Part shown: positions 1 to 30,032 of the stretch, piece after piece
Numbering within the stretch: position 1 is the stretch's first letter
Layout: every line of letters begins with the position of its first letter
Assembly: GCA_051530055.1 (NCBI GenBank)
Contig: JBMGUZ010000031.1
Coordinates: 1-31,127, forward strand
Length of the DNA stretch: 31,127 nt
From: Neoechinorhynchus agilis
Lineage: Eukaryota; Animalia; Acanthocephala
Reading direction: 5' to 3'
Translations under genes and position numbers: made by a program
Notes under the pieces: generated by a model
Told to the model about the DNA's origin: nothing
Database searches by the model: none
What the model saw: the letters and a program-made list of their open reading frames with translations, nothing else

Positions 1-7
1 TCTGGGC

Positions 8-6640: not shown

Positions 6641-6680
6641 CAACCTTTAAAATGAGTTTGTGACTTTTAGTTTTCTTTAG

Positions 6681-7284
6681 ATGGGCACGGAAAAACCGGA
6701 ATGGCCTAACCTACTGATTCATATGGGTGTATTTCTCTTTCTTTTTTCTGAATCATTAGACTAAACCGTTCAAACAAAGTCTTTTGGCATCAATCATAGA
6801 ATATAGTCCTGTGACCGCCCGTAGACCCATTTGTAATGTTCTCATAAAAGAGACAATTGAGAGCTTTACCGGCAAAAATGTGCCGATGAGTATTTTAAAA
6901 CAAAGCATCAGCTCGTTCAAACATGGATTAAAAATCACGGAGTCTCGGCGTACAGTAAAATATGTCGTGGATTCGGAAGGACGTGTTATTCCTAAGGAGA
7001 TCGAGTACAAAGCAAAGATGGCTGAATTGAATGTAAAAAACGATCGACAATTTCGATTAAATAACTTAAATGATGAGATTGATGAACGTCTCGAAAATAT
7101 GCCCAGCAGTGCAATGCAACAAGCTCTTAAATTACATGATTCACTGTTGAAAAAACCAGCGAACAATACCTGCGACTCATTGATTCTAGGGACGAAGACC
7201 AGCGATAATCTTTATCAACCGAATGTCGCTTCGAAAAAAGAGTTCGAAGATCTATTGAATCAATCAAACCAAAAGATCAACTGA
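6681..7284 (+). CDS. Unknown protein; 166-aa ORF with TTG start, or ~190-aa spliced model (exon 6681-6728, intron 6729-6759, exon 6760-7284)
   Basis: Open for 166 codons in both arms. The upstream in-frame stop is the TAG of a pyrimidine-rich acceptor. Removing a 31-nt GT..AG intron joins ATG 6681 in frame (MGTEKPEWPNLLIHMG/TKPFKQSLLASIIEY). No domain recognised. Confidence 0.4.
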
Positions 7285-7580
7285 AACAGTAACGGCAAAG
7301 AAAAATCGTCGATAGTAAAAAAATCGCTTATCTAGACGGAGATCTCAACGTGTAAAAATAAAAACAACTTTCCAAACTGAATTTGAAATACCAGCACAAA
7401 ATCATTTCTCGGCGTACCTGGTCAATGGTATCGTTCAAAGTTTTAAAAAATCCATCTTTGTAAACATTTAATTTTTGAACAGCGATTATTATTATTATTT
7501 CACGCCTCATACAACATACACACAATCAATCTCTTAATTCCTCTTTCTTGCTTGATCTAATATGTCTCGGGCCCAAGATG

Positions 7581-7620
7581 GCTGTGAGTTGTGGGACGAT
7601 CTCTTAAATCCCCTCACAGC
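7581..7620 (-). other. 3'-UTR stem-loop of LINE-A
   Basis: gctgtgag(ttgt)ggga-cgatctcttaaa-tccc-ctcacagc: an 8-bp plus 4-bp stem about 80 nt upstream of the (TAA)n tail. Confidence 0.65.
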
Positions 7621-7646
7621 AGCCTCGAAAACCCTTCTTTTAATTC

Positions 7647-10150
7647 TTAAGTAATAATAATCCTTTTCTTGTCCTGATCCTGTAAAAAAGAGAATAACAT
7701 GAGAAAATCACTTACCTCATTCCTGTTAAGTATATTAGTTTGATTAATGGGTAAAAAACTGGATGGTTTATTGAAAAAGATTCTAAGAATTGAGGAGTTG
7801 TAATTAAAATATTTACAGCTAGAATAATAATAAGAATAAAACCAAATTTTAGACAAAAAAATTCTTGTTAAAAAGGAAAAAAGGGGTTCCGTATCAATAT
7901 TATTTTTAATAAGAATACTGCTAAGCTTATTCAGCATAGTAAGATAAAATGATAGTCTGTTTTCTGGGGGCCGGCTTCGTGCGAAAAAGCATATTGAACC
8001 CCCTAGAAATATTTTTAACACTTTAGAAATAAAAGGTGGGGAAATTGATAACCTTTTCGCTCTTTTGATAAAAATATCTGTTTTTGTCAGAAGACTTTTA
8101 AAGGAAGAGTTTATAAAAATTCTATGATTTTTACAGGGGAAATCAACACCTAAACTCTTGGAATGCGATCTAAAATTGATATTAGGGAAATTGAAATTAG
8201 AAGATAATTCATTAATTAGAAGCTTCCTCGAAGCCAAAGTTTTAGTCAGTGGAATAAAGAAAGTTTTGTTATTGTTTGTAACTAAATTGGCTTTCCTAAG
8301 TTCCGACGACAAAGATTGCATAAAATTGGCTATATTATTCGTTAGAATAGAAGATGTTCTAGCTTTACAAAATAAGAATATATCATCCGCATAAACTAAA
8401 AGAAATATGGAAGATGATTTCTTTAAATTTTTGAAAATATATATAAGGGCAATTAAAAATAAGGTGGGCGAGAGTGGAGATCCTTGAGGAACACCATATC
8501 TAGAGAAATTTAGTGTGAGAAGGGTCCACCTCATAGTAAAAGGACTTGGATTCCATAAGATAGTTGGTTTTGTAGATAAGATTAAGAGGAACTTTAAGAT
8601 TAACTAAAGCCTCATAAAGAAAGCCACGGTCCAAGGCATCAAAAGCCTTATTAATATCCAGCTGAATGAGAAGTTTTTGTACATTAATAGCTTCATTCAT
8701 AGAATTAAGAGAGGATAAAAGCGATGTGACACCTTTACCTCCAATGAAGCCATGGAAAAAGTCGGGGATTAGCTTTCTAAATACTAAAAAATCATACAGT
8801 TTCCCGTTCACCGCTCTTTCTAAGCAAGAGAAGATTGGGTTCTGTATGGAAATTACTCTGATGTGGGATGCGTTAAATATACGTCCTTTCGTTTTGGGAA
8901 TAAAAATTTTCTTAACAATATTTATGTTAAGTAGATCATTAAAATCAATTTTCGATAAACGAAATCTACTAAAAAAATAGATTTTACCTTATCAGAAATA
9001 GAACTAAAAATTATGGGTGAAGTGCCATTTATATTGTACGCTTTAGAGGGGTTAGATTTACAGGCCTTCAGAAAAACTTCAACTTCAAAATTCCACGAAA
9101 AGGACTTTTTATTAAAGATGGGAAGTGGAGGAGAAGAACATGCACTAAGAGTATGTGCCATCAAAATATACTCAATTGCTGTAGGATAAGATATAGACCC
9201 TATCCAGTTAGATGCTTTTGCCTTCCAACAGACCGGTCTTCTTTTCAAAATACAGGACCAAAAGTCCTTACCAAAGGATTTAAGAGAGATCAGCTTCTTT
9301 TTGTCCAACGAAACTTGATGATAAAACTTAGCTGTGTAAAATTTTTTCATAAGTTTTTAAGGGGAGCGTTACCATACAAGTCAGCTATAACAGCATTTTT
9401 ATAAAATATGTTGACTTCATGACAAACAGGAGGTCGCTTGATCACAGACTTAGTAATTAAATTTTTATGTACAGAGGATAAAATGGCATTGTTAAAGTCA
9501 GATAAGGAGGATGAAATGGAAGAGTTCATAAAAGAAAGGAGATTATTATTAAATTTTGAAAAGCTTTTAGGATTAAAAACGAAAGTGTCCTTAAGAGAGA
9601 TGCCATTAGATTTAAAAAGGATAATCTCTGTGACTGAAGTTGGGAAGCAGGATAAAATAAAATAGGAATTGACTTTTTAATAATTGCACCATCCAAGAAG
9701 GTATGTCTATTAGATTTAACATTATGAAAAGAAGGAAATTTGGGGAGCAAAAAATTGTGAAACTTAAAAAAGGGCCTAAAAGCATTTAAAAAATTACTAT
9801 TGAAGTCGCCTACGATAAAGTCAGAATTCCAGTAACGAAGGATATGCATAAAAGATTTAGTAAATATACCCACGTGTCTGGGTTGAATATACAAGTTGCA
9901 AAGGATAAGAGTAGGAGAGAAAAGGGATGAGGTTCCATATAAGGGATTATTAAAAGAAATAATTTGCATTGCAAAAGAAATATTTTTAGTTTGAAAGAGA
10001 AGTTTAGAAGAGTGAGATTTAAGAATAAATGTTTGAAGTAGAAAAGCCGGTTTCTTGAAAACACAGCTTGTTAACATAGTTATCAACTACACAAGGAGTA
10101 AGAAAGTTAGGAAAACTAGAAGCCCTAAAGGCATTATATGTGATGAAAGA
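7647..10150 (-). pseudogene. LINE-A ORF2 (APE endonuclease + reverse transcriptase), split over several frames
   Basis: ORF pieces 9526-10086, 8922-9350, 8500-8811 and 7647-8534 carry the APE and RT motifs in the correct order. No RNase H seen. Confidence 0.9.
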
Positions 10151-10182
10151 GAAAGGACAGTCCTTATAATTGGAACAAGTCA

Positions 10183-11480
10183 TTAAATGAATTTAGGACG
10201 TTTGGAATCTATAGATTCCAAGTTACGCAAAGATGGGGAAATATCTCTTTTATAATTTTCACAATCGATCCAGTTATTAAAGTTAAATAATCTAGAAAAA
10301 TTGTCGGAGGTAGAGTCTGGTGTAGAAAGATTTTGCAGTTTGTGAAGGATCAAAGTAAGAATGTACTTAAGTAATGAAATTTCTTTATCGGGATAAAGTT
10401 GAGAAGTATTAATGGAAGATTTTAAACTATCAAGAAAGGATTTTTCCGGAGGTTTGGGGGGAAGTTTAGGCTTGTGACCATCAGGGGAAGGTTGAGTTTT
10501 CGACTCCTTAGAGGAAAAACCGTCCGAAGAGAAAGGATTATGTTGTGGATAGAATTCTCTATAACTAGAATTATGGAATACTCGCTGCTTCGATGGTATG
10601 GAATCGTCAAAATATTCTTGCGCGAATTTGCAAGAACGTGCAAAGGCCGGATGATTCTTGCCACAGTTTGCACAGGTAGAAGCATCAGAATTGGAGCAAG
10701 ATGATTTGTGATGAGGACCTGCACAAAAGATGCATCTGGAGGGGAAGACACAGTCAGATTCGTGGTGCTTCCATCTCGAACACCTCTGACATATCGTCAA
10801 ATTATAATCATAGATAGAGTCCCTGTATCGGTCAAAAGTGACCCAGTATGAGAAAAAACCCTGCCGGAGTTAGCTAGACTCTCGGCGACATTGATAGTAG
10901 CTGAACATAGGATGGCGTAGGCTGAACTAGCGTTGGGTCTAAACAGATATTTGACCAGTTTTATACCTAACTCATCCTCAATTTTGCGAAAATCAATAGT
11001 ATCCAAGTCTTGAGGAGGATTCCTCATTAGAAAGGTGACTCTACGAGATAGGTCAACAGATTGGATGCTTAACTCCCCTAGCATCTTAGAAAAGAGGTCT
11101 TTACCGGCCGCATCGAAAAAAATAAACAGGATGTGGAATTTGGCCACCGAGAACCTCTTTATCAAAAAATTCATATATTTCTCACGACCATTCGGCAGTA
11201 AATACTTCTCGAAGAAATAACGCGAGAAATAGGAGGGGGAGTTAGTGCCCATGGCTACTTTGGGAATTTTGATAACGAAATCCTCTTTCCTAACAGGACG
11301 CTTAAACCTTGATGCGTCGATCGAATGTTCCATCTGATCCCCTATGGAAACTTGTGCACAATCATTCAAAACTTCACAATCACTCGGGAGGAGGGGGATA
11401 GTAGGAACAAACCTTAATCTAGACATGTCGGAAATAGGGTTTATCTGATTGCTGATATTCGAAGCGCAATTTTGCATCAC
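10183..11480 (-). pseudogene. LINE-A ORF1 gag-like protein, one frameshift near 10800
   Basis: CQRCSRWKHHESDC, CIFCAGPHHKSSC and CANCGKNHPAFARSC give CX2CX4HX4C, CX2CX3HX4C and CX2CX3HX6C, the triple-knuckle pattern of Jockey/I/R1-group ORF1. Confidence 0.88.
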
Positions 11481-12292
11481 GAAACACCGCTTTTGTACGT
11501 TTTAAACTGAGAAGTACAATAATCAAACGTGCGCGATTGAATGCGAACAGCGATTGAATGGACGACTATGCGATCCGAGTTTCACTGCAATTCGATCGTT
11601 TTGAACGAATGCGTGCAAATTTTGGTTCGCAAATTTGCGCTGACAATTGTTTGGATCATTTAAGACCCCCGGATCCTCCAGGCGGATCGAAGGTAGAAAT
11701 TTGTTAGATATAATTCCTAATTCCGGTTTTGATGGAGCTCTGGGTTCATCGCTTCCCGTAAACCAGGAAGGTGTGGTATCTCCGGTTTTGATGGAGATTT
11801 GGGAGCATCGTTGAAAAATAGGTATAATCTCCGACCAGTTAAAAAGGAGGACTATATTTTTGTCATTAAAAATGAAGATCTGTTCAAAAAAGAAATCGGA
11901 ATAAAAAATATCGCAAAAGAATTCGCCAAAGCTTATCCGAAAAATTCTAAGATTTTCAAAAGAATATTTCAATATTCCCATAAAATTGTCCTTTTTTCAG
12001 AAAACTATAAGAAGGATTTCCTGAAATACCTATTTACCATTCCCTACTCAGATTTCTCCAGGAAATGCAACATCTTGATGCTAAACGATAAAAAATATAT
12101 AAGAGATCAGTTGGGAATAATATTTTTAAAATACTTCTTTAAGCCAAATTGCCAAATGCAATGTTGGGACAGACATTGACGATGCATGTCGAAGGGACGG
12201 GTCGCCGATCGGATTACTTGGTTTTAACGTCACCTTCGCAGTATTCAAGAATGAGATGGATGATTTTATACTCATATCAATACAGAAAATGT

Positions 12293-12508
12293 GAAAATCG
12301 AAGGATACATGTTTTTTCCCGGATTTGGCGAAATTTATTAAATTATTTAAAGAGTCAATATTTCGACTAGCTTGTGAGTCTTCTTCAGGACGTTGCTGGT
12401 AAGTTTTCAAATATTCGAGTTCGAGCAACGTCCTGAAGAAGACTCACAAGCGAGTCGAAATATCGACCCTTTAAATAATTTAATAAATTTCGCCAAATCG
12501 GGGAAAAA
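12293..12508. mobile_element. 216-bp fold-back insertion carrying an inverted pair of hammerhead motifs, 12-bp TSD
   Basis: 85-bp inverted arms 12313-12397 and 12424-12508 (4 mismatches), flanked by t(a/g)cagaaaatgt at 12281-12292 and 12509-12520. Excision restores the first zinc knuckle of LINE-B. Confidence 0.88.
12430..12467 (+). ncRNA. Minimal type I hammerhead ribozyme, intact core
   Basis: GUC-CUGAAGA-A-GACUC-ACAAGC-GAGUC-GAAA-UA-UC-GAC: stem I GUC/GAC, perfect 5-bp stem II, predicted cleavage after C12464. A slightly mutated copy lies on the minus strand at ~12354-12391. Confidence 0.8.
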
Positions 12509-12852
12509 TGCAGAAAATGTCAGGGGCACACGGCATACAAATGCAGTAAAAATGCAGCTTGCACTCACTGCAGTGGGGAGCACCTGTTCAGTAATTGCAA
12601 AAAACAAGTGCTGTAGAAAATGTGTTAACTGCATTTTGAACCATATGGCATACGATACCAGATGCGAGGACGCAAAAAAGTATTTGAATTTTTTCATTAA
12701 CAGTGGCGAGAGTAGGATAATGGAGACAAGGGATCAGTAAAATATATTTCTCAAAATCCTCATCAAGAGCCAGATTTGAAGTCCATCAAATTTTGATTTG
12801 CTAAAGAAAATGAGGGCTTGAAAGAGGCGTTCAAAGTTTTTCAAAATATTAC

Positions 12853-12994
12853 GTTTTGTTGAAAAGATAATTCATTGTTATTTGTCGATAGGAGAGATAA
12901 ATGAAATTAAGATTTTATTTTCAGCAGAGATAGTGGATCGAAATATAAAATAAATTCTTAATTTCATTTATCTCTCCTATCGACAAATAAAAAA
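12853..12994. mobile_element. 142-bp fold-back insertion, 12-bp TSD
   Basis: 44-bp inverted arms 12878-12921 and 12947-12990 (1 mismatch), TSD tcaaaatattac at 12841-12852 and 12995-13006. Excision restores the frame KEAFKVFQNITKGLEAIRNENKEL. Confidence 0.88.
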
Positions 12995-15828
12995 TCAAAA
13001 TATTACAAAAGGGCTTGAAGCTATTAGAAATGAGAATAAGGAATTGAAAAGTTCCTTAAAAAGCTTAATTAAAACCTTAAAAAGGTTACAATGGGAGGGG
13101 GCGACGTTGAAGGTCGAGGAGGCATTAAAAAGAGCTTTGCCTATTCCCAGCCTGGAAGATACCAAACCCGATTCGGGACCGACCAAGAAGGTATATGCAA
13201 ACAGATAGTGTTCGTTTTTTACATGTAATATTGGGTAATCCAGGAACTTAGATAAATTAGATAATGATTTGTTTGGTGGGTTTTTACAAGAAACAGGGAC
13301 CTTCCATCATTTGGCTTACCTATTTATGAATGTTCTTTAACTAAGCCAATCTACCCATCAAATAGTAAAAACTACTCCGGTGGTTTACAATCATTTTTGA
13401 GAAAAGATATTCAACCGAAAATGATCCGTGAAATTCATACGAATGAGCACGTTATTCAGATAATATCATCCCTGAATCCTTTTCTAAATAAGGAAGCTTA
13501 TTGCGGGCCCCTTAAAATAATTTGGGTGAATTTCTACCGCAATCCAAAGTGTAACATTAGAAAATCATTAGAGGCCATGAAAGAGCTCTTAGAAGTATGG
13601 AAGCCTGATGTCATGACTGGTGACTTCAATAATAATTACTTGAATGCCTATAGAAGCTTATTCTCATCTAACTATACCACCATTATCTCTCAAGAACCCT
13701 CGTTCCACAATTGGTCGCGAGGATTTCCCTTTTTTTTATAGATGGATCAATAGTAAGTAAAGATTTAAATGCTTTATTCACTTTGGAAATCCAAATGAGA
13801 ATGAGCTGGCGTCTGGGTCATGATGCTTCGTTCTTCACAAGCACTGGCCGAGTCTCTTAAAAAGCGTATAAAATTAACACCAAATCTATTTTGTATTTTT
13901 AATAAAATTTTACTGGAACGAATTAAGCAATTGTTAGCTGTGCTGCTTAGGTTCAGAGTTGATCTTAAAACAAACTAGAAACGCAGGCTTTAGGCGTCAA
14001 GATCACAATTTGGGATTTCTTATTAAATTAGAAATTGAAGCCAGAGAAAGCGGACATCACTCAATTGCCCAAGTATTTAAAAAAATACTTCTCTTCTATT
14101 GGAAGGAGATTAAAAAAGAGAGAAAAAATCTATTGAAATGTGCAGTTTCTCTAAAAAATGGTGGAATATAATTTTAAATAAGAAATTTGTGGGCTGGAAG
14201 TCCAAAGCAAGTTCATGGATTGGGTGCTCTTCCTATCCTGAAGCAGTTAAATCGATTTGAAACTACCATATGGGTGAAATCAGACCCGAGCCATATTTAA
14301 GACCAATTAATTTCAACGATAACTTGGAGGAGAGTGATTATTTTCCGATTTTATAAAGGCCTCGTTGGTGGGTCACTCATGGGCTCATAATACGTTCTCG
14401 CCTCCATCGGCAATATTTAAACTAATAAGCGAAGAGGTTAAGTCTGTGATGATTTTGAAAATATTTTTTTATTTAAGAATTTATCAAATAATGGAGATTA
14501 ATAAAGTCAAACGTATTTTGATTCCCAAAAATAATTGCAAAAAGATCACGCAGGTCAAGGAACTGGGGCCCATTTCCATTGAAAGAGCGATAGCATGGAA
14601 GCTCTTAGATTTCGTTCAAGATAATCATTTAATTCCGCCTCCACAGTCTGATTGAACAATTAGTTGAGTTATCTAGAGAAAGACAACGATATGTCAACGC
14701 GTTGCTACAATTCGACATATCGAAAGCATTCGATGAAATTGATCGCTCTTTTATCTCTAAGACTTTAAGATTTTTGAAAGTGCCTAAAAAAACTTATCGA
14801 CTATACTTTGAGCTTGATAAGGATAAGAGAATTTTCTATCCTGTTCATGGAGTCACCTTTATCACCAATCTTGTTTGTGGTAGCTATGTCTTTTTTATTC
14901 AAAAACTACAAGCTGAAAAATGGATCTGAAATTTTTGTTGACGCGGACGATATTTCCTTTTTTTATCAGAGGTTTCTGAGAAATATCCCAGAGGCAATTA
15001 AAAGTTGCTTGCAGAAAATTGGAAAACTACTGGGGAAAGCTCATCTGGATACAAATCTCCAAAAATGTCTTATTATCCCTAACAACCGGACCAGAGCAAC
15101 TAATCTTAGAACTTCAACACTTTTATCTAATTTTAGAGAGTTGCCGAAGGTTTCGAAAAATAGCAAGTTATTAGGACTTAAGGTCCCGTTATTTGGATAC
15201 CCGATTTACGACTTGGGAAGGACTCGAAATATGTTTTATAAAGCTAAACTCATATTGAAAAGGGGGAGGCGTTTAAGTCTAAATGATAAAATGGTGATAA
15301 ATATAATTAAAACCCTTATTTTTGGTACAATTTGCTTTTTTTATGAGAGGCAGACCACCAGAACAACGACTTATGATGTTTTTTAAAATCTTCCCGATTG
15401 TTAAAAAGATCAAGTTCTTATTAGCGGAATCAATTTGTAGCTGTAAATATAAATTCGCAAAACTTGTTTGAAATTCACACAATCAAATGTGCCTGCAACT
15501 AATGAAAGCAAAGTTCTATTCAACTAATTTTAAAGAAATTATAATCCGAGACTCTCCTAAGAAAAACCTTGATCATTTTTTAGAATCATTTGTATTCCCC
15601 TTCACAAACGGTGAGTTACCTTAACAGATCCTGTTCAAAAATTAAATGTTTACAAAGATGGATTTTTTAAAACTTTGAACGATACCATTGACCAGGTACG
15701 CTGAGAAATGATTTTGTGCTGGTATTTCAAATTCAGTTTGGAAAGTTGTTTTTATTTTTACACGTTGAGATCTCCGTCTAGATAAGCGATTTTTTTACTA
15801 TCGACGATTTTTCTTTGCCGTTACTGTT

Positions 15829-16432
15829 TCAGTTGATCTTTTGGTTTGATTGATTCAATAGATCTTCGAACTCTTTTTTCGAAGCGACATTCGGTTGATA
15901 AAGATTATCGCTGGTCTTCGTCCCTAGAATCAATGAGTCGCAGGTATTGTTCGCTGGTTTTTTCAACAGTGAATCATGTAATTTAAGAGCTTGTTGCATT
16001 GCACTGCTGGGCATATTTTCGAGACGTTCATCAATCTCATTATTTACGTTATTTAATCGAAATTGTCGATCGTTTTTTACGTTCAATTCAGCCATCTTTG
16101 CTTTGTACTCGATCTCCTTAGGAATAACACGTCCTTCCGAATCCACGACATATTTTACTGTACGCCGAGACTCCGTGATTTTTAATCCATGTTTGAACGA
16201 GCTGATGCTTTGTTTTAAAATACTCATCGGCACATTTTTGCCGGTAAAGCTCTCAATTGTCTCTTTTATGAGAACATTACAAATGGGTCTACGGGCGGTC
16301 ACAGGACTATATTCTATGATTGATGCCAAAAGACTTTGTTTGAACGGTTTAGTCTAATGATTCAGAAAAAAGAAAGAGAAATACACCCATATGAATCAGT
16401 GGGTTAGGCCATTCCGGTTTTTCCGTGCCCAT
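15829..16432 (-). CDS. Second copy of the unknown arm protein
   Basis: Mirror of 6681-7284. It differs by two residues (LND vs VNN), and the putative splice sites are retained. Confidence 0.4.
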
Positions 16433-17284
16433 CTAAAGAAAACTAAGTCACAAACTCATTTTAAAGGTTGTTTTTTTTGCGGATTCGCTTTATGCCAAAA
16501 AATTAAGATTAATTTTTTCCATAGAATCTGGGACGGACCTCTTGTCGCGAGAGCTCACAGCTCTCTTCTTTCAGGTTCTCGCGATGGGGTCGTCCGAGCT
16601 AGACTGTTGGCAGTTTCAACACGAGAATCTGGGGCGTGGTTGGAGGCTGTTCCTCTGGCATCTGTGGGAACTCTTCTTACTGACGAGGTAACGAGGATCG
16701 CAGTATCCTTAAGACTCGGTCTCCCGATATGCACGCCCCATCGCTGTCGATGTGGGTCTTTGGTTGATGCTTTCGGGCGACACGGTCTCGTCTGCAGAAG
16801 GTCAGCAGGAAGGTTTTCACGCCATTCTGAAATCAATAACGTAATTTCTCGGGCGTTGAGAACGGCGAACTTCCCGAACATCCTGGAACCCGCCCACCTC
16901 TGCAGACTAGACGGCCGTAGGCCCGATGGAATTTCAGTCTTCCCGTGGCGGGAGGGCAAATGCCTTCTCTGGGACGCCACGTGTGTGGACACCCTCGCAG
17001 CCAGCAACATCCCCTACTCCCTCGAAATCGCCGGTGGTGCCGCCAGTGCAGCGGAAGGGAGGAAGGTACGAAAATATATGCAGCTATCGAGGGCTCACTA
17101 TTTTGTCCCCTTTGGGGTAGAGACGTATGGAGCGCTCGGCAGCTCGGCACTCTCTCTCCTCAAGGATCTCTCGAAGAAATTGAGAGAGGCAACCGGAGAC
17201 TCAAGAGCAGGCTTATTTCTTCGACAAAATATCTCGCTGGCAGTACAACGGGGCAATGCTGCCAGCGTGATGGCGACGGTCTAG
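16391..17284 (+). CDS. Chimeric 297-aa ORF: ~45 arm-derived codons fused in frame to the CRE RLE nuclease domain
   Basis: The ATG at 16391 lies in arm sequence, and CRE homology starts at ~16526 (IWDGPLV). No stop or frameshift in the nuclease part. Confidence 0.6.
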   Translation: MNQWVRPFRFFRAHLKKTKSQTHFKGCFFCGFALCQKIKINFFHRIWDGPLVARAHSSLLSGSRDGVVRARLLAVSTRESGAWLEAVPLASVGTLLTDEVTRIAVSLRLGLPICTPHRCRCGSLVDAFGRHGLVCRRSAGRFSRHSEINNVISRALRTANFPNILEPAHLCRLDGRRPDGISVFPWREGKCLLWDATCVDTLAASNIPYSLEIAGGAASAAEGRKVRKYMQLSRAHYFVPFGVETYGALGSSALSLLKDLSKKLREATGDSRAGLFLRQNISLAVQRGNAASVMATV

Positions 17285-17372
17285 GAAGGACAAAAGCTGG
17301 AATTTGGTGGGAGGTGGTGAATGTAAAGAAAAGTAAACTTCAAAAAATAAACAATAATGTTACAAAAAAAAC
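16526..17372 (+). mobile_element. Young 5'-truncated CRE-clade non-LTR retrotransposon (restriction-like endonuclease end)
   Basis: GC-rich block absent from the left arm. Contains the CCHC finger HRCRCG...HGLVC, RH, RRPDG, WDATCVDTLA, AEGRKVRKY and QRGNAAS, then a ~90-nt 3' UTR with an A-rich end. About 4 bp (ttta) are lost at the site and there is no TSD. Confidence 0.92.
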
Positions 17373-17739
17373 ACGCTTAATAAATGAAAAAAGCGTCGGA
17401 TCGATCACATAATAATTCAATAAAGTCCAAAATTATATTTAGCATTTTTTCGCGGATTCGCTTTATGCCAAAAAATAACAATTAATTTTTTCCATAGATT
17501 TAACGCTTAATAAATGAAAAAAGCGTCGGATCGATCACATAATAATTCAATAAAGTCCAAAATTATATTTAACATCATAGAGAACCTTTAAAAATCGATA
17601 TGATATTAAAAGCGAGAACTGTTTTGATGAAATCTAATGAGGCACATTTACCACAATTCAAACTAATTTATTAAATGCTATTTTACAGTCAAAAAAAGAT
17701 TATTAAAAGTTTCTGTTTTTTAGGCATTTCTTGTGCGTT

Positions 17740-18240
17740 TTCATGTTTATGGCGTAAAAATTAAAGAAATTTTGGTTGCGCCTTCGAAAACAATCATTTT
17801 TTAATAAATTAATTTAAATTTTTATTGATTATTTTAAAGCGACGAAAATGATTTTATTTTTAAAACCCGACTGATTTCAGAGGCACAATCTTATACGTCT
17901 TTTGTCAACGTTGTTTTAAAATCATTTTCTTCCCAATAAAACAACCACTTTTGTTATTAAACAAATCGATGATCAAATTGGAAAAGCCACGATGTCGACC
18001 TAATGAAATTGTTTGCTAACTGACAAGTTTTAACACTAAAAAAGACAAGTTTGCAAGTGAACAACCAATGAAACAAAAAAGAAAGTTCAGATGAAAGGGC
18101 GTACAAGATTGTGCCCCTGTAAATAATCTGCAGTTTAAAAATAAAATTATCATTTGATTTCTACGCCATAAAACAACCAATATAAACAATTCAATCTTCA
18201 AACGGTTTAATTTTTATGCCATAAACAATTTAATGTTCAA
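17740..18240. mobile_element. Penelope-type inverted 3'-end pair with degenerate HHR (left arm keeps only 6068-6413)
   Basis: Plus copy: cagatga-aa-gggcg-tacaagattg-tgccc-ctgtaaa at 18088-18123, then ...ctacgccataaaacaacc. Minus copy: cgtataagattgtgcctctgaaatc at ~17873-17897, then aaataaaatcatttt...tacgccataaac. Confidence 0.5.
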
Positions 18241-19070
18241 TCTATGTTTTAACAAAAAAATTGTTACATTATACCGAAAACAAATTTCAATTATTGGTCT
18301 TACAAACGTTTTTCCTTAAAAAATCAATTTTTTTATCCTTTGTAGTCACGATTGTTCTAAAAGAGATCCCGAAACTGGTGGCTGAGATGTGTATAATCGG
18401 AAATCCGAACTGCAAGAAACACTTTACCGAAGCGTTATTGCTATACTTCTCTTTTTGGCACCCTAACCCATTTGCTATACCGATTTCTCACATGTTTATT
18501 TCGTTGCTTCTAAGATTGTCTAAACAATATGTCTAATTTTTGTAGTATTTGAAAATCATCCATTGTGGACTTCAGAATAAAATGAAAACTAAAAGCGACC
18601 AGAAATTAGGCTATTGTGAAACGTTTTGGAAAAGAATAAATCTTTTGTTGGATCCGAGCTTAAGACCAAATTCTACGGGATGATAGAAATTCCTCCCCTA
18701 GGATCGGGAAGATATTGATTGCTACAACTTATAAAGAAAATTAGCAACCCTAAATTCATAATCTTTATTTATCTGCTTGAGTCAGACATCGATGACATTA
18801 ACGTATTTCACCAAATAAATCGATAAATGGCGGAGGCAAGGTTACCTCCTTCTAAATATCTGGGAGTATTTTCACCCAAATGATACTTTGACTAACCCGA
18901 AGGATTTTCTCTATCGATGAATTTTGAAATATTTTCATTTTCTCAATTGCTCAGGATGTTAGAAAACTTTCAAGAAATTCCTTAGGAAGTCGTAAGACAG
19001 CGAAAGCACACGGAAATTAAGATTTTCTTTTTGTCATTACAATAAATAAAACTTATTCAAAAGATCTCGA
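18240..19070 (+). mobile_element. Decayed Penelope-like 3' fragment within right arm
   Basis: Same motifs as the left copy. HHR-like cttagga-agtcgtaagacagc-gaaagc at 18981-19007 closely resembles the motif at 27024-27050. Confidence 0.45.
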
Positions 19071-19639
19071 GAGGAGGACGGCAAAAAATTTGACATTATT
19101 TTTAAGCGTCAATTGAACGCCAATTCGATGGCATGCAACCTTCTTTTTTTAGAATTTATCTCAGTTTTGTTTCACTAAAAAAGAAAAAGTTTTTGATTGC
19201 ATATTGATGTAGGTTTTCAGTGACTACGATATGAAAAATTGGTGATCGCCAGAATCTATGAATGTTTTTTTGTGCGAAATTCCTCCATGTTTTTGTATTA
19301 TGCCGATAATAATGAAAAAAATCCCACAAACGGCATACAGCGTATTTTTAGGTCGCTTCTGTGTTTTATGGTGAAAGCGTTGCTTAGACCCAGCGAATCA
19401 TGTCCACTATTTAGACTACGAGTATAAAAGCATTAAACAAAATGTCTTTTATTGCCACCGTTGGTAATAGTCGAACTGATTTTAAGACAAAAGACAAAGT
19501 GTTTTAAACTAAAGCATTTCTTCTTTATTTTGAATGTTTCAATAGACGCTTTTTGTTTAAACACAAAATCAAACAATTTGTTAGTAGTTTTTGTTTTTAG
19601 TTAATTCTATACAGAGGATTTGTCGATGTTTACTGTGAG

Positions 19640-22600
19640 TTTTCAAATGAAGATTCGGACAAATTTCAATTTTTCAACGCCAGAAATTAGCAATACGATA
19701 AAAAAGATTCGCATATTAATCAGTTTTTATTGTGCACCAAAGTTGAACTTTGTTAACTATACGAAACAAAATCTGATTTTTTGAAAGAAAACACAAAAAA
19801 CTTTGTATTTCCCGTTGTTCATTAGAGATCGGAATTAACATTTTTGTAAAAGATTTCCACGAATGGAATAAAGCGATCGATTCAGTTAGTCTTAATCTAA
19901 GATTTCTATTCAAGATTAAGATAAATTTCAATTTTCTGTCAGCGCTATCGCATTTTAATAATTTTTTTAATTTAATTACCAAAATTGAACTTTGTTAACT
20001 TTACGAAACTGAATCTGATTTTTTGAAAGAAAACATAAAAAACTTTGTATTTCCCGTTGTTCATTAGAGATCGGAATTAACATTTTTGTAAAAGATTTCC
20101 ACGAATCAAATCAAGCGATCGATTCACAAAGTTCAAGATTAGGACAAATTTTAATTTCCTGAGAGCGCTATCGCATATTAATCATTTTTTTAATTAAATT
20201 ACCAAAAGTGAACTATGTTAACTTTACGAAACTGAATCTGATTTTTTGAAAGAAAACACAAGAAACTCTGAATTTCCCGTTGTTCATTAGAGATCGGAAT
20301 TAACATTTTTGTAAAAGATTTTCACGAATGGAATAAAGCGATCGATTCAAAGAGTCTTAATCTCCGATTTCTATTCAAGATAACAACAAATTTCAATTTT
20401 TTTTCTGTCAGCGTTATTGCATATTAATCATTTAATTAAATTACCAAAATTGAACTTTGTTAATTTTACGAAACTGAATCTGATTTTTTGAAAGAATATT
20501 TTTGGAAAAGATTTCCACGAATGGAATAAAGCGATCGATTCAAAGAGTCTTAATCTCCGATTTCTATTCAAGATTACGACAAATTTTAATTTCCTGTCAG
20601 CGCTATCGCATATTAATCATTTTTTTAATTAAATTACCAAAGTTGCGCTTTGTTAACTTTACGAAACTGAATCAGATTTTTTGAAAGAAAACACAAAAAC
20701 TCTGTATTTCCCGTTGTTCATTAGAGATCGGAATTAACATTTTTGTAAAAGATTTCCACGAATCAAATCAAGCGATCGATTCAAAGAGTCTTAATCTCCG
20801 ATTTCTATTCAAGATTAAGATAAATTTCAATTTTCTGTCAGCGCTATCGCATTTTAATAATTTTTTTAATTTAATTACCAAAATTGAACTTTGTTAACTT
20901 TACGAAACTGAATCTGATTTTTTGAAAGAAAACATAAAAAACTTTGTATTTCCCGTTGTTCATTAGAGATCGGAATTAACATTTTTGTAAAAGATTTCCA
21001 CGAATCAAATCAAGCGATCGATTCACAAAGTTCAAGATTAGGACAAATTTTAATTTCCTGAGAGCGCTATCGCATATTAATCATTTTTTTAATTAAATTA
21101 CCAAAAGTGAACTTTGTTAACTTTACGAAACTGAATCTGATTTTTTGAAAGAAAACACAAAAACTCTGAATTTCCCGTTGTTCATTAGAGATCGGAATTA
21201 ACATTTTTGTAAAAGATTTCCACGAATGGAATAAAGCGATCGATTCAAAGAGTCTTAATCTCCGATTTCTATTCAAGATAACAACAAATTTCAATTTTTT
21301 TCTGTCAGCGTTATTGCATATTAATCATTTAATTAAATTACCAAAATTGAACTTTGTTAATTTTACGAAACTGAATCTGATTTTTTGAAAGAAAACACAA
21401 AAACTCTGTATTTCCCGTTGTTCATTAGAGATCGGAATTAATATTTTTGTAAAAGATTTCCACGAATGGAATAAAGCGATCGATTCAAAGAGTCTTAATC
21501 TCCGATTTCTATTCAAGATTACGACAAATTTTAATTTCCTGTCAGCGCTATCGCATATTAATCATTTTTTTAATTAAATTACCAAAATTGAACTTTGTTA
21601 ACTTTACGAAACTGAATCTGATTTTTTGAAAGAAAACACAAAAACTCTGTATTTCCCGTTGTTCATTAGAGATCGGAATTAACATTTTTGTAAAAGATTT
21701 CCACGAATCAAATCAAGCGATCGATTCACAGAGTCTTAATCTTCGATTTCTATTCAAGATTAGGACAAATTTTAATTTCCTGCCAGCGCTATCGCATATT
21801 AATCATTTCTTAATTAAATTACCAAAATTGAACTTTGTTAATTTTACGAAACTGAATCTGATTTTTTGAAAGAAAACACAAAAAACTCTGTATTTCCCGT
21901 TGTTCATTAGAGATCGGAATTAACATTTTTGTAAAAGATTTCCACGAATGGAATCAAGCGATCGATTCACAGTCTTAATCTTCGATTTCTATTCAAGATT
22001 AGGACAAATTTTAATTTCCTGCCAGCGCTATCGCATATTAATCATTTCTTAATTAAATTACCAAAATTGAACTTTGTTAATTTTACGAAACTGAATCTGA
22101 TTTTTTGAAAGAAAACACAAAAACTCTGTATTTCCCGTTGTTCATTAGAGATCGGAATTAATATTTTTGGAAAAGATTTCCACGAATGGAATAAAGCGAT
22201 CGATTCAAAGTCTTAATCTCCGATTTCTATTCAAGATTACGACAAATTTTAATTTCCTGTCAGCGCTATCGCATATTAATCATTTTTTTAATTAAATTAC
22301 CAAAGTTGCGCTTTGTTAACTTTACGAAACTGAATCTGATTTTTTGAAAGAAAACACAAAAACTCTGTATTTCCCGTTGTTCATTAGAGATCGGAATTAA
22401 CATTTTTGTAAAAGATTTCCACGAATCAAATCAAGCGATCGATTCAAAGAGTCTTAATCTCCGATTTCTATTCAAGATTAAGATAAATTTCAATTTTCTG
22501 TCAGCGCTATCGCATTTTAATAATTTTTTTAATTTAATTACCAAAATTGAACTTTGTTAATTTTACGAAACTGAATCTGATTTTTTGAAAGAAAACACAA

Positions 22601-23127
22601 AAACTCTGTATTTCCCGTTGTTCATTAGAGATCGGAATTAATATTTTTGTAAAAGATTTCCACGAATGGAATCAAGCGATCGATTCACAGAGTCTTAATC
22701 TTCGATTTCTATTCAAGATTAGGACAAATTTTAATTTCCTGCCAGCGCTATCGCATATTAATCATTTCTTAATTAAATTACCAAAATTGAACTTTGTTAA
22801 TTTTACGAAACTGAATCTGATTTTTTGAAAGAAAACACAAAAACTCTGTATTTCCCGTTGTTCATTAGAGATCGGAATTAATATTTTTGTAAAAGATTTC
22901 CACGAATGGAATAAAGCGATCGATTCACAGAGTCTTAATCTTCGATTTCTATTCAAGATTAGGACAAATTTTAATTTCCTGTCAGCGCTATCGCATATTA
23001 ATCATTTTTTAATTAAATTACCAAAATTGAACTTTGTTAATTTTACGAAACTGAATCTGATTTTTTGAAAGAAAACACAAAAACTCTGTATTTCCCGTTG
23101 TTCATTAGAGATCGGAATTAACATTTT
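19640..23127 (-). repeat. Same ~240-bp satellite, inverted, about 15 copies
   Basis: Reverse-complement monomers (tttcccgttgttcattagagatcggaattaa) at the same spacing. Confidence 0.99.
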
Positions 23128-24200
23128 CGCTCCTCAGCTGTGGTTCCTGATCTCCCTCCGGTTTAACGATGGCGAATTTATTTTTGCTGGCTGCGAGGCC
23201 CCAGAAAAAGTATTTGCCTCCCTCGCCACGGGAATACTATGATACCGCCTGGTCTACGGCGGTCATCGAGTCGGCAAAGATTGCTCGGCCCTAGGATGTT
23301 GGGCGTTTTCACAGTATTCAGGGCACGGCTAAGGGAATTGCGTTCACTTCAGGGTGTCGTGAGTACCTCTCGTCTGATTGCCGACGGACGATTCCCGTGG
23401 CATCCCGATGGTTCCACAGTCGCTCCGCAACGGCAGCGATGGGATGTGCACATCGGTACCCCAAGTCTCAGGGACACTGCGGTCTTTACTGTCTCACCGG
23501 AGGGGACCGACAAAAGCGATTGGGATAGCTTGAAAATTTAATTGTTCATATAGGTTGTTTTCTGGCGTAGTAATCAAAATGATTTCAATTTCGACGTCAG
23601 AAAACAACCGATTCGGATAGCATTGAGCCAAGCACCCGATTATCTTGTAGAGACTGCCGCCAATCGAGTTCGGTTCACCAGTTCACGAGAATCTGAAATT
23701 AAAGAGTTATGAATTCTCGCTACCAGCCGCGAGTGTTAAACTGATTGTTTGCAACCATTGACGGGTACCTGCTCGCTGCCTGAATATCCACACCAAAGAT
23801 TAAGCGCCTCTACGAAATCTTCATCCAAAGTGTAATTCTCGCCAATAACGGAATTAATTATTTTGCGGATTGTTTCAAACGATCCCAAATAAGCTGAGAA
23901 ATATCGGCTGCTTTTCAGATACCCAAACCGCCGGGGACACAGGCAAAGACGCTTGACGCCATGCTTCGTCCGACAGCTGAGTATTTAAAATTCCCCGAGA
24001 GAGTCTTTCACCTTCTCGTCTAATTTTTCCAGCTTATCCTTATGTATAAAATAGGTGCTGTGCAAAGTTTATACATCAGTTTTGGAATGAAGAGGGTATT
24101 CTTGATCAGGAACAGATCCTCATGTGAAGATAATTCATCAACTCGTTCACACAGTACCCAAAGTTACGGTTGAAGATTGGCAATCTCTGCTTCCCTATTT
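23128..24200 (-). mobile_element. Old decayed CRE-clade retrotransposon, 3'-truncated at the satellite
   Basis: Minus-strand remnants LCERVDELSSHEDLFLIKNT, IPKLMY, AWRQASLPVSPGGLGI, RTRLAAVSTR.SGAWL, SLRLGVPMCTSHRCRCG and FPWR are collinear with CRE RT-thumb and RLE regions. Confidence 0.85.
23530..23608. mobile_element. 79-bp fold-back insertion into the old CRE, 13-bp TSD
   Basis: Arms ggttgttttctggcgt (23553-23568) and acgtcagaaaacaacc (23594-23609), TSD cgatt(g/c)ggatagc at 23517-23529 and 23609-23621. Excision rejoins the CRE coding sequence. Confidence 0.8.
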
Positions 24201-24852: not shown

Positions 24853-25040
24853 GAACAAAAGAGAAGGTAAACTGAACAAGAAATGGTCGCAAAAAGCGAG
24901 CAAAAAAGAGAGGATTGACGGTACAAGAAATGGTGACAAAAGACGAGCAAAATAGAAGATTAACAGAACAAGAAATTGTGAAAAACGACGAGCACAAGAG
25001 AAGATTAACTCAAAAAGAAATGGTCGAAAACGACAAGCAA
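24853..25040 (+). repeat. 45-bp tandem repeat, about 4 copies, coding-like (EQKRRLTEQEMVxxD)
   Basis: Units begin ga(a/g)ca, contain agaag and caagaaatggt, and one unit has a stop or indel. Confidence 0.8.
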
Positions 25041-25286
25041 CAATGAAACTGAAGTTGAAGTGAAACGTTCAAGTCCTAATCGTACCGATATGTCAGTTCA
25101 GCGAGTTTCATCGTGTGGCGTTTCCATTGGCGCAACTCAATGATCATTGGTTCAAAGGGGACAATCCTTCTCCCAACCACAGCAGATAAATCGAAGCCAC
25201 CAACGATCGAGCAATGTTCCAATACGAGTGTTCAATCTGACTACATGACGTCTTGACCAGCGTACGGTGGAAGTTTTGTTCCACCA

Positions 25287-25778: not shown

Positions 25779-26439
25779 CTTACGATCCAAATGTGCGGTT
25801 CCTACTGAGCCATCGACGAAGCATTGGGTACCGATCACGCCGTTTATGCGAGAGGTTTATGATCCATCGAGCAGTTCGTTTTGGTTTACGGCGATACGAC
25901 CTTTTATTTTGAAACACTAAAGTCCATATGATTTTTCTATAAGCAAATATTCTCAAAATATTTGTGTATATAATATTTGTTTCGTTTGTTGATTATAGCG
26001 ATACAAACATGTGATTCACGTAGCATCCACGGTCGTCCAAATCCTTCCATAATTCATTTTCCATTTAATGTGATTTCAGTTTTCCTCGTAATACAACTTC
26101 CTCAAGAATATACAAAGGTGCGTGGAGATATGAAGTGCATCAAAGAAGCTACATCGAAGCGGAAATCGATCCAAGCTATCCTCAACGAATTAATTTTGTG
26201 CAGCATTTTACTTGAGCAGCGGGTTCTATTTGTCAAGCGATGCCTTAGAAACATTTTTATATAATAATAACACGCTTTATTAATGCACAAAGCGGATCCA
26301 TCTACCTTTTGGTTCTCATGAACACTCGAGTTATGATTGGATAAATTAATCTGGCTATTGATTTTGGAGTGGATTACGAATCCGGGCGGGTGAGTGGTGG
26401 GAATTGGTAGTCATTGTTTGCAGGAGCGCTTGTAAGGTT

Positions 26440-26900
26440 TTTCCTTCGTAAAGTTCATTTCAGGTTATGGTATCCGTGAAGATTGGGCTGCATGGAAAAA
26501 AGAGCGTAGGTTCGAGTTTAGGCGGATGAAATGAATTAGGATTACGAGTTTTGCACTCGTTGCATTTTGATTTTTAATGAAAATATTATCAAGGCTTTCG
26601 GTGAGCGGGTAAAAATCAACTGTGCAAATTTTAGAGACTCTTCTATGAAACGTTTCAAAGCAACGGATTTGTGATTGGGAAAGTTGGCTAAATTAAGGTG
26701 TAATAAAATTTGGAGATCGTACCAGGAGACTCCTAAATGGCTAAGGCGTTTGAGGAAATAAATTTTAAAGGTATTGCCTTTAAGGAGAAAATGTAATTTT
26801 CGACTTCCATTTCAGATTCCATTGAAATTTGAAACCTGGCATTCTGGGGGAGGTGACTCGTTGGATGTCATTTGGAAGATCGGGGTAGGATGTGGGGTTG
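26440..26900 (-). mobile_element. Decayed L2/CR1-like LINE 3' fragment (related piece at 31040-31110, plus strand)
   Basis: KIYFLKRLSHLGVSWYDLQIL and RNPNSFHPPK...SFFP resemble CR1/L2 ORF2 C-termini. ttttccatgc(a/t)gcccaatcttc(a/t)cggata(c/t)cataac(c/t)tgaaatga is shared with 31062-31105. Confidence 0.5.
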
Positions 26901-27011
26901 CGGGAGAATGAAGGCATCGTTTCGAAGCATTTAGAGTAACTCAGGTGGAGTTTGTGACTGTCGCAGAAATCTTTTATGTGTGTGATTTATTAAGTTCACA
27001 TCTCCACGCGC

Positions 27012-27062
27012 CTTTGTATATTCCCGAGGAAGCCGTAAGACTGCGAAAGCTTTAAAACAAAG
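27012..27062 (+). ncRNA. Hammerhead-like motif, one core substitution
   Basis: cuuugu...CCGAGGA-A-GCCGUAAGACUGC-GAAA-GCUUUA-aa-acaaag, with palindromic AAAGCUUU. The core has CCGA instead of CUGA. Confidence 0.55.
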
Positions 27063-27744
27063 ATTATCTTTATCATTACCACAACCCGTCCAAGTTTCAA
27101 TAAAAAACTTGATCGATCACGCGGCTGGAAAATCAAGTAATATTTCACAAAACTATATTAAAACATAGCGATCATTGGTGGAAAATAACGATGATTATAC
27201 GGAGTGTGGAATCTATCATTTAGGTAAATCTTTTATTTTAACGATGCAGCGGGATTTGAGATAAGCATAATGGTCTCACGATCCAAAATGACACTTTGAC
27301 GACAAAATTGCAACCGAAATCACTGCAACATAAGCCGAGTTTTGTCTTCTCGTATTTTTAGGGTTTGAAACAATTTTCTTTAAAATTTCCGTGCATAGGG
27401 CAGTCGCAGCGTAATAGAATATTAAATACCCAAGAATTTAGCAAGCTACATTAATGAGGAAAGATCTGAAAATGTCAGAATCGTCTTTTATTTATTAGTT
27501 GCCTTGAATAGATTTATTTTGCTGTTGTTAAGTTCTGAAATTTCGCAAAACGATTCTTGTCATTAAATGCCAGAATTCAAAAACGCAGACACGAACTTGC
27601 TGCTTTCAATTGAAACAGTCATTATTTCGGTTGTATTCTGGCGGAGAAATTAAAATGATTTTATTTTAAAATCCAGCTACTTATGTACTATATCGACTAC
27701 ATTTAAAAAGTGAAGTTAAGTTAAAATAAATAAAGATACCAAAA

Positions 27745-29653
27745 TATTCTCAATGGCGAATTGTAACACACTCGAGCTTTATTATTGAAATCAATCTTGC
27801 GAATTTTCAAGGTCTCAGCCTCCTCCCAGAGTATCTAAAAATGGACGTGAGCCTTGACTCGAGTGCGCAGGACCGTCGATTCCCGAGGTGATGTTTCACC
27901 CCCTGCACAAAAGACAAATGGAGATTCCTCGTCGGAAATCCTAGAGAATGATTGCTCTTGTTCCCTTCCATTGTGTCCTCCATGTCAATGAGCAGAGCCT
28001 CTATTATCAACCTGCTCTGTTGGTTCCTCTCGGCCATCATTGTAAACGCATTTTCAAAATCGATTCTGTAGTCGTTGTTGATAGCGTGATTGAACCTCAT
28101 GTTTCTCTACTCTTTTTCGCATCCCCTATTTTGTCTGTCCAACATTGACTTGGTCGCAATCCTTACAGGTTATCGAATATACCACGCATCTCCGTAATTT
28201 GTGATGGTCTCACTTTCAGTATCCCGCTCAGTTTGAGTCCTGACGAATAGTAGGGAACCAGATTCGTCGAACTCGGTTTTCTAGAAATGGGTGTCTGCAT
28301 GTTACCCATCCTCGTTGAGATGAACTGAACTCGAATGAATTTCTTCTTTAAACCGTCTCTAACATCACTTTTCGTCGTGCTCTTCACTCGAGCCAATGCC
28401 TTCCTTATAGAATATGTCGCGTACTCAAGGTCCTGAAGTTTTACAAAGATGCTCTCAATGTCCTTCCTCACCCTTTGATCATTGTTTACGATCTTTATGA
28501 CTCGCTTGAGGATGTTTGCTGCAGCATTGATTTTATAATTGGTAGGTTGTATCAACACATCTAACCCAAAAATCGAAACGAACGGGTTGATGTGCACGAG
28601 AGATTCTCGAGATGTCTCCGAAATGGTATAATGCGACCTTCTTAGCCGACGAGCCACTTCAAATAGAAGATCTTGAAGCTTTTAAAATGCCTTCATTTTC
28701 AGTGATTGGATTCGATGGATCATCGCAGATAGTCGGAAATTCATTTGGGAGATATGGACGGTTTGAGCCTTGAGCGAGGCGGACGACCTGACTGTGGTAA
28801 TTAAGGAACGTAACTATGTGCAAGCTCGAGCGGTCCGTGGCGGGTTTACTTGGCTTATTGAATAACGACGTCGTGATCAAGGTTCCTTGTTGTTGTATCA
28901 ACACATCTAAGAAGCTGATCCTTCCCTGCTCGTCCTTTGGGGTGATGCTCCACTTTATCAACGGATTTATTCCGTTCAATTGATCCCCTAACTTCATTTT
29001 AATAAGATCCTTGTTAGTCACTGCAAACACATCGTCAGCGTACCTCCACCACGCCACAATCACAGGAAACCTCAATCCCAGTTGCTTTTCATATTCGATC
29101 ATATAGATGTTGGCCAACGCTGGTCCTAACGGTGATCCCATTACAAATCCGTTCGTCTGGTCGTAGAATTTTCCTTCGAATGAGAACCCAGACGATCAAT
29201 CAGTACTGACCAATCATCCATATCCAGCTTGGGATCCAGACATCGTGCGGCCAAGATAGTTGCTTCCTTTATCGGTACGTTCGTAAATAGTGCCGTGAAT
29301 CTGCCGTCCAAAGGAAGTTGTTGCGAGGATCGAATATTCCGATTGCTTCAACGAATGGCGGGCCATCTTTAACGTATGATGCTGGAGTTTCCATGTTATC
29401 CCGAATTAGTGTGTTAATATCCTTTGCTAACTTGTGGCCAAACAAAGAGTAATATGCCAGTGATCGGTCTGACCTTCAGAAATGGTTTGTGGACCTCTGG
29501 TAGCAGGTACATGAAGCCCGGCTCCGCATTAGCAGATCTTATTCTCGCATACCAGTTTTGGGTAATTTTCCCGGCCCGGAGGCTGAGGCCTTGGAAATTC
29601 GCAAGATTGATTTCAATAAAACTCGAGTGTGTTACAATTCGTCATTGAGAATA
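27745..29653 (-). mobile_element. Penelope-like element relic (RT + GIY-YIG remnant) with inverted copy of its 3' end at its 5' side
   Basis: Contains YLLPEVHKP..VRPI, MGSPLGPALANIYM, WWRYADD, ISFLDV, LVPYYSSGLKLSGILK and RIDFENA...RLIIEALLI. Segment 27745-27823 is the inverted repeat of 29578-29653. Confidence 0.9.
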
Positions 29654-29933: not shown

Positions 29934-29983
29934 GGGCGTCGAAGAAACTATAAATTATGTATACTCAGAAATAGATTTATATT

Positions 29984-30017
29984 GAAAATTTTCGGCCTTT
30001 TCGTTGGCCTTCTTCAG
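29984..30017 (-). ncRNA. Minimal hammerhead ribozyme core
   Basis: Minus strand CUGAAGA-A-GGCC-AACGAAAA-GGCC-GAAA-AUUUUC, where GAAAAUUUUC is a perfect palindrome. Proximal stem I pairs poorly. Confidence 0.7.
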
Positions 30018-30032
30018 TCAGATCTACAATTT

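Follow-up and report, generated by a model that had tools for sequence, protein, structure and literature searches.

Three very short fold-back insertions in an acanthocephalan genome and their probable Penelope-like origin

What reaction could have produced the same small fold-back layout three times, in sequences that do not align with one another, within a single contig? The question is raised by a contig of the acanthocephalan Neoechinorhynchus agilis (GenBank assembly GCA_051530055.1, contig JBMGUZ010000031.1, positions 1 to 31,127). By 'the window' we mean this whole stretch of 31,127 nucleotides (nt), which is AT-rich eukaryotic DNA. It contains three inserts (inserts 1, 2 and 3), 80-218 bp in total size and without coding sequence. 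Each consists of two inverted arms around a spacer, with a tail on one side only, and is flanked by a duplication of the target site. We conclude that each insert is quite probably a single very short (abortive, extremely 5'-truncated) integration by the reverse transcriptase (RT)/GIY-YIG endonuclease of a Penelope-like element (PLE). A Penelope-type origin had already been suggested in the initial annotation of this DNA, and it is supported by the published layout of PLE insertions, by hammerhead motifs in insert 1 and by a PLE that resides in the window.

Re-measurement confirmed the basic layout that had been annotated, namely duplications, one-sided tails, arms and spacers of 25-26 nt. In insert 1, a 12-bp duplication with 1 mismatch (12281-12292 and 12509-12520; 10 bp exact) encloses a tail of 20 nt (12293-12312, plus strand; in the minus-strand reading it extends the left copy at its 3' end), a left arm of 85 nt (12313-12397, minus strand), a spacer of 26 nt without self-complementarity (12398-12423) and a right arm of 85 nt (12424-12508, plus strand). 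The two arms have 4 mismatches over 85 nt (95% complementary). Insert 2 is flanked by an exact 12-bp duplication (12841-12852 and 12995-13006) and comprises a tail of 22 nt (12853-12874, plus strand; 25 nt if the arm is taken as 44 nt), a left arm of 47 nt (12875-12921, minus strand), a spacer of 25 nt (12922-12946, plus strand), which together with the first base of the right arm holds a degenerate hammerhead-like motif, and a right arm of 47 nt (12947-12993, plus strand; 2 mismatches, 96% complementary to the left arm). The duplication around insert 3 is again 12 bp long with 1 mismatch (23518-23529 and 23610-23621), or 13 bp counting a shared C. Its tail (23530-23552, 23 nt), left arm (23553-23568, 16 nt) and spacer (25 nt) form one minus-strand segment (23530-23593), followed by an inverted second copy without the tail, the right arm (23594-23609, plus strand; 16 nt, 1 mismatch). 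Across the three inserts the arms are 94-96% complementary, the inverted repeat begins 20-23 nt inside one end, and the side opposite the tail has 0-1 extra bases. Of the lengths given in the initial annotation, the spacers (26, 25 and 25 nt), the tails of inserts 1 and 3 (20 and 23 nt) and their arms (85 and 16 nt) were reproduced. The arm and tail of insert 2 had to be changed (47 instead of 44 nt and 22 instead of 25 nt), as did the duplication of insert 3 (12 instead of 13 bp). The spacer value itself is soft by ~4 nt, as it becomes 22 nt in insert 1 and 21 nt in insert 3 if one more G-C pair past the mismatch is counted. The z-scores of single-strand folding are -21, -12.9 and -6.95 for inserts 1, 2 and 3, respectively.

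The inserts had been described as unrelated in sequence, and by pairwise alignment this holds: no similarity between them is significant (all p > 0.1), although they have short motifs in common. In the sense orientation, the arms of all three end in an A/C-rich run. All three tails have an ATG within a few bases of the arm boundary, followed by TTTTC(AA) near the end. Read on the minus strand, the tail of insert 1 has the ATG at the arm boundary and TTTTC at its end; in insert 2 the ATG overlaps the arm boundary and TTTTCAAC lies within the tail.

Inserts 1 and 2 are hosted by the gag region of a dead long interspersed nuclear element (LINE), LINE-B (plus strand, ~11500-15627). Insert 3 lies in a GC-richer stretch immediately past the right one of two satellite arrays. 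The gag frame of LINE-B reads Y-R-K-C upstream of insert 1 and resumes downstream as C-R-K-C-Q-G-H..., the start of a CCHC zinc knuckle. The left duplicate falls in the region of the first Cys codon, the duplicated 12 bp code for the Y-R-K-C/C-R-K-C stretch of the knuckle, and excising insert 1 with one duplicate restores the knuckle. Similarly, excising 154 bp (insert 2 with one duplicate) joins ...FKVFQNIT to KGLEAIRNE... in one frame. A paralogous element, LINE-A (minus strand, ~7487-12000), is collinear with LINE-B at the protein level, lacks both inserts and has an uninterrupted knuckle pair. At the two sites, the conserved blocks of LINE-A lie closer together by ~213 and ~129 nt, roughly the length of insert plus duplicate (228 and 154 bp). 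Inserts 1-3 are real insertions with target-site duplications. The mismatch load of the arms (4-6%) and of the duplications (0-8%) suggests three events of similar, moderate age. An assembly artefact was considered as well and is ruled out by the 4-8% mismatches in arms and duplicates and by the fit of the duplications to the coding frame.

An unbiased search for hairpins (arm of at least 11 nt, loop of at most 60 nt), which excluded the satellite arrays and made no use of the annotated coordinates, gave six hairpins. Three of the six are flanked by a duplication, and these are exactly inserts 1-3; their loops are all 25-26 nt and the tail side is the same in each. No duplication flanks the remaining three, whose loops measure 15, 50 and 60 nt. 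In second-order Markov shuffles, 2.3 hairpins and 0.017 duplication-flanked hairpins are expected per 23 kb. Duplication-flanked hairpins are far in excess of chance. A search of the window for further duplication-flanked short inserts found none, and a PLE locus from another genome yielded microsatellite hairpins only.

PLE insertions are known to form partial tandems, and many have a 5'-truncated copy in inverted orientation on their 5' side. In such a unit both ends are 3' ends of the element, and a tail of 30-40 bp is present on one end only, in addition to the duplication (PMC8557442; PMC3846280). In Adineta vaga the tail is 31 bp and the duplications are 8-10 bp, and the published PLE pseudo-long terminal repeat and tail contain the start of an open reading frame (ORF) (PMC3846280). 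In experiments with purified PLE protein, both strands of the DNA were cut and extended (Frangieh et al. 2024, PMC11167929). Reverse transcription was initiated at two internal, A/C-rich sites next to each other, and the distance between them equals the tail, a signature that was called unique to PLEs (PMC11167929). Inserts 1-3 resemble the insertions of endonuclease-positive (EN+) PLEs (A. vaga Pen2a, Naiad, Penelope/Poseidon) in several respects: two copies of a 3' end stand head-to-head with the ends outward, the extension is on one end only, the target site is duplicated, the A/C-rich arm ends resemble the mapped RT start sites and, in insert 1 only, there is a predicted hammerhead in the terminal repeat. 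The A/C-rich arm ends together with the ATG-bearing tails match published PLE termini (PMC3846280, PMC11167929). We favour a PLE-type origin because head-to-head 3' ends, a one-sided tail and a duplication are the published PLE signature. However, in contrast to EN+ PLE insertions, the whole unit is only 80-218 bp long and non-coding, and the duplication is 12 bp in all three inserts versus 8-10 bp in A. vaga.

The initial annotation held that this geometry was undescribed at so small a scale, and regarded the fixed offsets as a possible enzyme footprint. Neither the size nor the tail offset turns out to be new. De novo PLE insertions in mutation-accumulation lines of Chlamydomonas have a median length of 128 bp, reached via 5' truncation (PMC9977147). 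The inserts are comparable to these Chlamys insertions, in which extreme 5' truncation leads to insertions of ~100 bp. The passages of this report that were consulted describe neither a fold-back nor a constant spacer, and the report concerns a different host kingdom and a different PLE clade (PMC9977147). The tail offset is already explained by the two adjacent internal RT start sites (PMC11167929). Head-to-head ends, a one-sided tail, a duplication, a hammerhead and a very small size are all known properties of the PLE class.

A hammerhead ribozyme is among the features that could tie the inserts to PLEs. Searched with Rfam at the gathering threshold, the whole window gave no hammerhead; what Rfam returned were sub-threshold microRNA-precursor models only, that is, generic matches to perfect hairpins. 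The helix III required by the Rfam models is missing from metazoan PLE hammerheads, and we therefore wrote our own descriptor of the minimal hammerhead, derived from Cervera and de la Pena 2014 (PMC4209133). Its elements are CUGANGA, one base that may stand unpaired between positions 9 and 10.1, a helix II with G10.1-C11.1 as its closing pair, GAA, A15.1, a palindromic stretch of 0-4 nt (helix III being palindromic), U16.1, H17 and a short helix I. The strict descriptor matched the window three times, at 12430-12467 (plus strand), 12354-12391 (minus strand) and 29983-30020 (minus strand), versus no match in 300 shuffles. Two of the three are the right and left arms of insert 1, each facing outward. 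They agree with the minimal hammerheads of metazoan PLEs (PMC4209133) in CUGANGA, the unpaired base before helix II, G10.1-C11.1, GAA, the palindromic AUAU of helix III and a short helix I. The helix I predicted for insert 1 would have only 3 bp, the motif is undetected by Rfam, and inserts 2 and 3 have no intact core. The predicted cleavage point in insert 1 would lie 44 nt from the outer arm end. A relaxed descriptor, allowing up to two core mismatches (~1 match expected per window), added one site. It lies at 12922-12945 (plus strand), across the spacer of insert 2, and ends just before the right arm. This motif is 46 nt from the outer arm end (44 nt in insert 1) and has the 9-mer TCGAAATAT in common with insert 1. 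The estimated chance of a relaxed match anywhere within inserts 2 or 3 is below 0.01. One putative PLE-type minimal hammerhead in each arm of insert 1 supports the PLE-type origin.

The third strict match, at 29983-30020, has CUGAAGA, an unpaired A, a GGCC/GGCC helix II, GAA and AAUU. It lies ~330 nt past the inverted end of a PLE at 27745-29653, with no obvious fold-back around it.

This element (minus strand) is decayed and 5'-truncated, and retains RT (YADD) and GIY-YIG motifs, the latter in the block VVYSITCKDCDQVNVGQT... At its far side, at 29578-29653, there is a 79-bp inverted copy of its own 3' end. Thus, a real PLE with the inverted-end design is present in the window, which also supports the PLE-type origin of the inserts. 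No relative of its RT exceeded 39% identity in the protein collection searched. Inside the element, a 19-nt exact direct repeat (28546-28564 and 28892-28910) encodes an LDVLIQ-like stretch in both copies, and this suggests that part of the RT region was duplicated internally.

Were the fold-backs made during integration, or did they exist beforehand? According to the latter view, the inserts are pre-formed non-autonomous mini-elements, each a hairpin plus tail, which PLE proteins retrotransposed whole, so that the geometry was inherited or selected. Insert 3 bears on this point directly. Taken together, its tail, left arm and spacer are homologous, without a break and at 87.5-90%, to a repeat end that occurs at 6117-6155, 18153-18200 and 27629-27661 (identity of 87.5% to 18153-18200 and of 88% to 27629-27661); insert 3 corresponds to the last 64 nt of a repeat family. 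The matching family is non-coding. One copy (18115-18205, plus strand) has the tail-like end and no fold-back, and its mirror copy (6108-6200) is in the other arm of a large palindrome; the third (27606-27680, minus strand) is a more diverged copy of the family end. All three extend further as longer elements, and none has an inverted partner there. The presence of fold-back-free family copies elsewhere in the window indicates that insert 3 acquired its fold-back during or after its insertion, contrary to the idea of pre-formed units. In addition, three non-alignable families would each have had to evolve the same spacer. What can be said for pre-formed units is that inserts 1 and 2 have no relatives elsewhere in the window, and hence none that could show a fold-back-free source. 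On balance, we consider pre-formed units unlikely.

The family from which insert 3 stems is probably old, non-autonomous and derived from a PLE. It is abundant in the window (6108-6200, 17745-18205, 27606-27680 and ~30925-30950) and has the core GGTTGTTTT(A/C)TGGCGTAG. A hammerhead-like remnant with a mutated core lies ~50 nt upstream of its A/C-rich arm end. At 27569-27642, a 12-nt inverted match (GCCAGAATTCAA/TTGTATTCTGGC) marks a second short convergent (tail-to-tail) fragment of the family, ~20 nt from the tail of the 27606 copy; this match may be due to chance.

Taken together with the published PLE biochemistry, these features point to dual-strand priming combined with two start sites, a scheme that we infer from the literature. 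The endonuclease would nick the two strands with a stagger of 12 nt, which would later become the 12-bp duplication. The two exposed 3'-OH ends would then act as primers on the RNA of a PLE, or on one derived from a PLE, and reverse transcription of its 3' terminal region would yield the same RNA end twice; these two copies, joined head-to-head and with their 3' ends outward, would form the arms. If one copy began at the distal start site and the other ~20-23 nt further in, a one-sided tail would result. If one complementary DNA (cDNA) reached ~25 nt further up the RNA than the other, the excess would appear as the spacer. The three inserts would then represent three families with one terminal architecture: a hammerhead, ~45 nt, an A/C-rich start site and a tail with ATG and TTTTC. 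Priming by both 3'-OH ends of a staggered break is also known from twin priming of L1. There, two adjacent parts of one RNA are joined, giving an inversion without an inverted repeat, and the poly(A) tail is kept. In the inserts, in contrast, the same terminal segment is copied twice.

Priming on both strands of a staggered cut was one of two mechanisms proposed in the initial annotation, and it fits the published PLE activity. The other was snap-back of the nascent cDNA. In that case a single cDNA (tail, arm and spacer) would fold with a loop of ~25 nt, copy its own arm, stop at the tail boundary and jump to the other target end. The contiguity of tail, arm and spacer in the source family of insert 3 agrees with such a route, the steric size of the loop would account for a constant spacer, and self-priming has been proposed for inverted junctions of Penelope (PMC3846280). 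The two routes differ in which copy the spacer may belong to. For insert 3, the family alignment assigns the spacer to the copy with the tail. For insert 2, it appears to belong to the copy without the tail, as judged from weaker, positional evidence: the hammerhead-like motif makes the spacer and right arm one sense unit, with the motif offset as in insert 1. A spacer in the tail-less copy is impossible by snap-back, and so pure single-cDNA snap-back misfits insert 2. If both assignments are right, single-cDNA snap-back is not the general route, and the constant would be the difference in reach, no matter which copy is ahead. A further weakness of snap-back is that a stop at the boundary of arm and tail has to be assumed ad hoc, whereas two start sites have been demonstrated experimentally (PMC11167929). 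Overall, we regard it as quite improbable. A model with two cDNAs of equal length, in which the spacer equals the tail, was rejected too: it fits inserts 1 and 2 numerically and fails in insert 3 (64 nt versus 16 nt).

The constant spacer of 25-26 nt is possibly the only new regularity here. It is based on three inserts, is not explained by the literature and could be a coincidence. If loop lengths are uniform between 3 and 60 nt, the probability that two more loops match the first to within one base is ~0.003 by our arithmetic. A recurrent spacer of this length is not reported in PMC3846280, PMC8557442 or PMC11167929. One conceivable explanation, which we find rather doubtful, is that the spacer is a fixed mechanical offset of the Penelope integration complex, such that, with both strands of the cut primed on the same terminal RNA segment, the trailing polymerase always ends ~25 nt short of the leading one, no matter which of them is ahead. 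The cause would then be either the spacing of the two active sites in a dimer or a collision footprint.

An origin unrelated to PLEs also has to be weighed. Hairpin RNAs could have been retroposed by a LINE, or the inserts could be miniature inverted-repeat transposable elements (MITEs) or fold-back DNA transposons. LINEs are abundant in the window, short runs of A stand at the end of the right arms in inserts 1 and 2, and duplications of 10-15 bp are typical of LINE-mediated events as well. However, the A runs are part of the inverted repeat, and there is neither a poly(A) nor a LINE 3' tail; moreover, LINE twin priming joins adjacent segments and does not copy the same segment twice. As for DNA transposons, the inverted repeat is terminal on one side only, which is not how transposon terminal inverted repeats are placed, and we know of no DNA transposon superfamily for which a 12-bp duplication is typical. 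The PLE-type hammerhead motifs of insert 1 are a further argument against an unrelated origin, which we take to be very unlikely.

Several other candidates were considered and set aside. The inserts do not have the properties of a MITE or fold-back DNA transposon, as the inverted repeat lies 20-23 nt inside one end and the duplication is 12 bp. A retrozyme (a non-LTR type with tandem hammerhead repeats) is ruled out by the hammerhead motifs of insert 1, which are inverted and not direct, and by the lack of a tandem array. Repair synthesis templated by the flanks (polymerase-theta type) is ruled out since the arms do not reproduce the flanks. Hairpin introns flanked by TA are ruled out by the 12-bp duplication and the asymmetric inverted repeat.

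Three larger inverted repeats had been annotated as larger versions of the same design, forming a graded series with the inserts. This holds in part. The element at 27745-29653 is a true PLE with a 79-bp inverted 3' end, and the repeat at ~17822-18205 is an old inverted arrangement within the insert 3 family (arms 71% complementary). The one at 26078-27051 is an inverted repeat with 66-nt arms that are 76% complementary. The case for a graded series is weak, as no duplications were detected around the larger repeats and just one of them shares sequence with an insert.

A number of observations weigh against integration by PLE enzymes as we propose it. No duplication was found within 60-70 nt of the ends of 27745-29653, 17822-18205 or 26078-27051. 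No insert could be matched, within the window, to the 3' end of an autonomous PLE family, and the one coding PLE of the window is unrelated in sequence to inserts 1-3. The tails are 20-23 nt long, versus 30-40 bp in published PLEs. Even at E ≤ 10, Rfam gave no hammerhead (types I-III, HH9, HH10) in 12200-13100 and 23400-23750; the motif of insert 2 has two core mismatches, and insert 3 has no hammerhead by either the strict or the relaxed descriptor. Finally, dual priming alone does not predict a constant spacer of 25-26 nt.

The surroundings of the inserts are themselves rich in repeats. Self-comparison of the window revealed a large inverted duplication, the arms of which (~1-7486 versus 23235-15628) are 98.7-98.9% identical. 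Inside each arm there is an array of a 240-bp satellite (1-4600 and 19630-23130). The centre of the palindrome is occupied by LINE-A and LINE-B, placed head-to-head, and their 3' ends abut the palindrome arms at 7486 and 15628. Two blocks of the right arm, 16526-17372 (~847 nt) and 17540-17894 (~355 nt), are missing from the left arm. The former is GC-rich, contains an ORF of 297 amino acids without a Pfam match and is bounded by repeats of ~54 nt with 93% identity (16472-16525 and 17445-17498). Outside the palindrome, a unit of 45-47 nt is present in four tandem copies with 75-77% identity at 24853-25046.

With inserts 1-3, an acanthocephalan genome provides clean examples of an insertion type that is already known. 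Such inserts can break other repeats and, by extension, genes. The resolution of PLE integration intermediates is poorly understood, and insertions as short as these are the simplest outcome of that reaction found in nature. The 25-26-nt spacer and the 12-bp stagger, if they prove to hold across the genome, would provide measurable constraints on the geometry of the dimeric enzyme and on whether the two strands are primed on a single RNA. Should the fixed offset be true, ultra-short insertions would preserve a genomic footprint of the enzyme.

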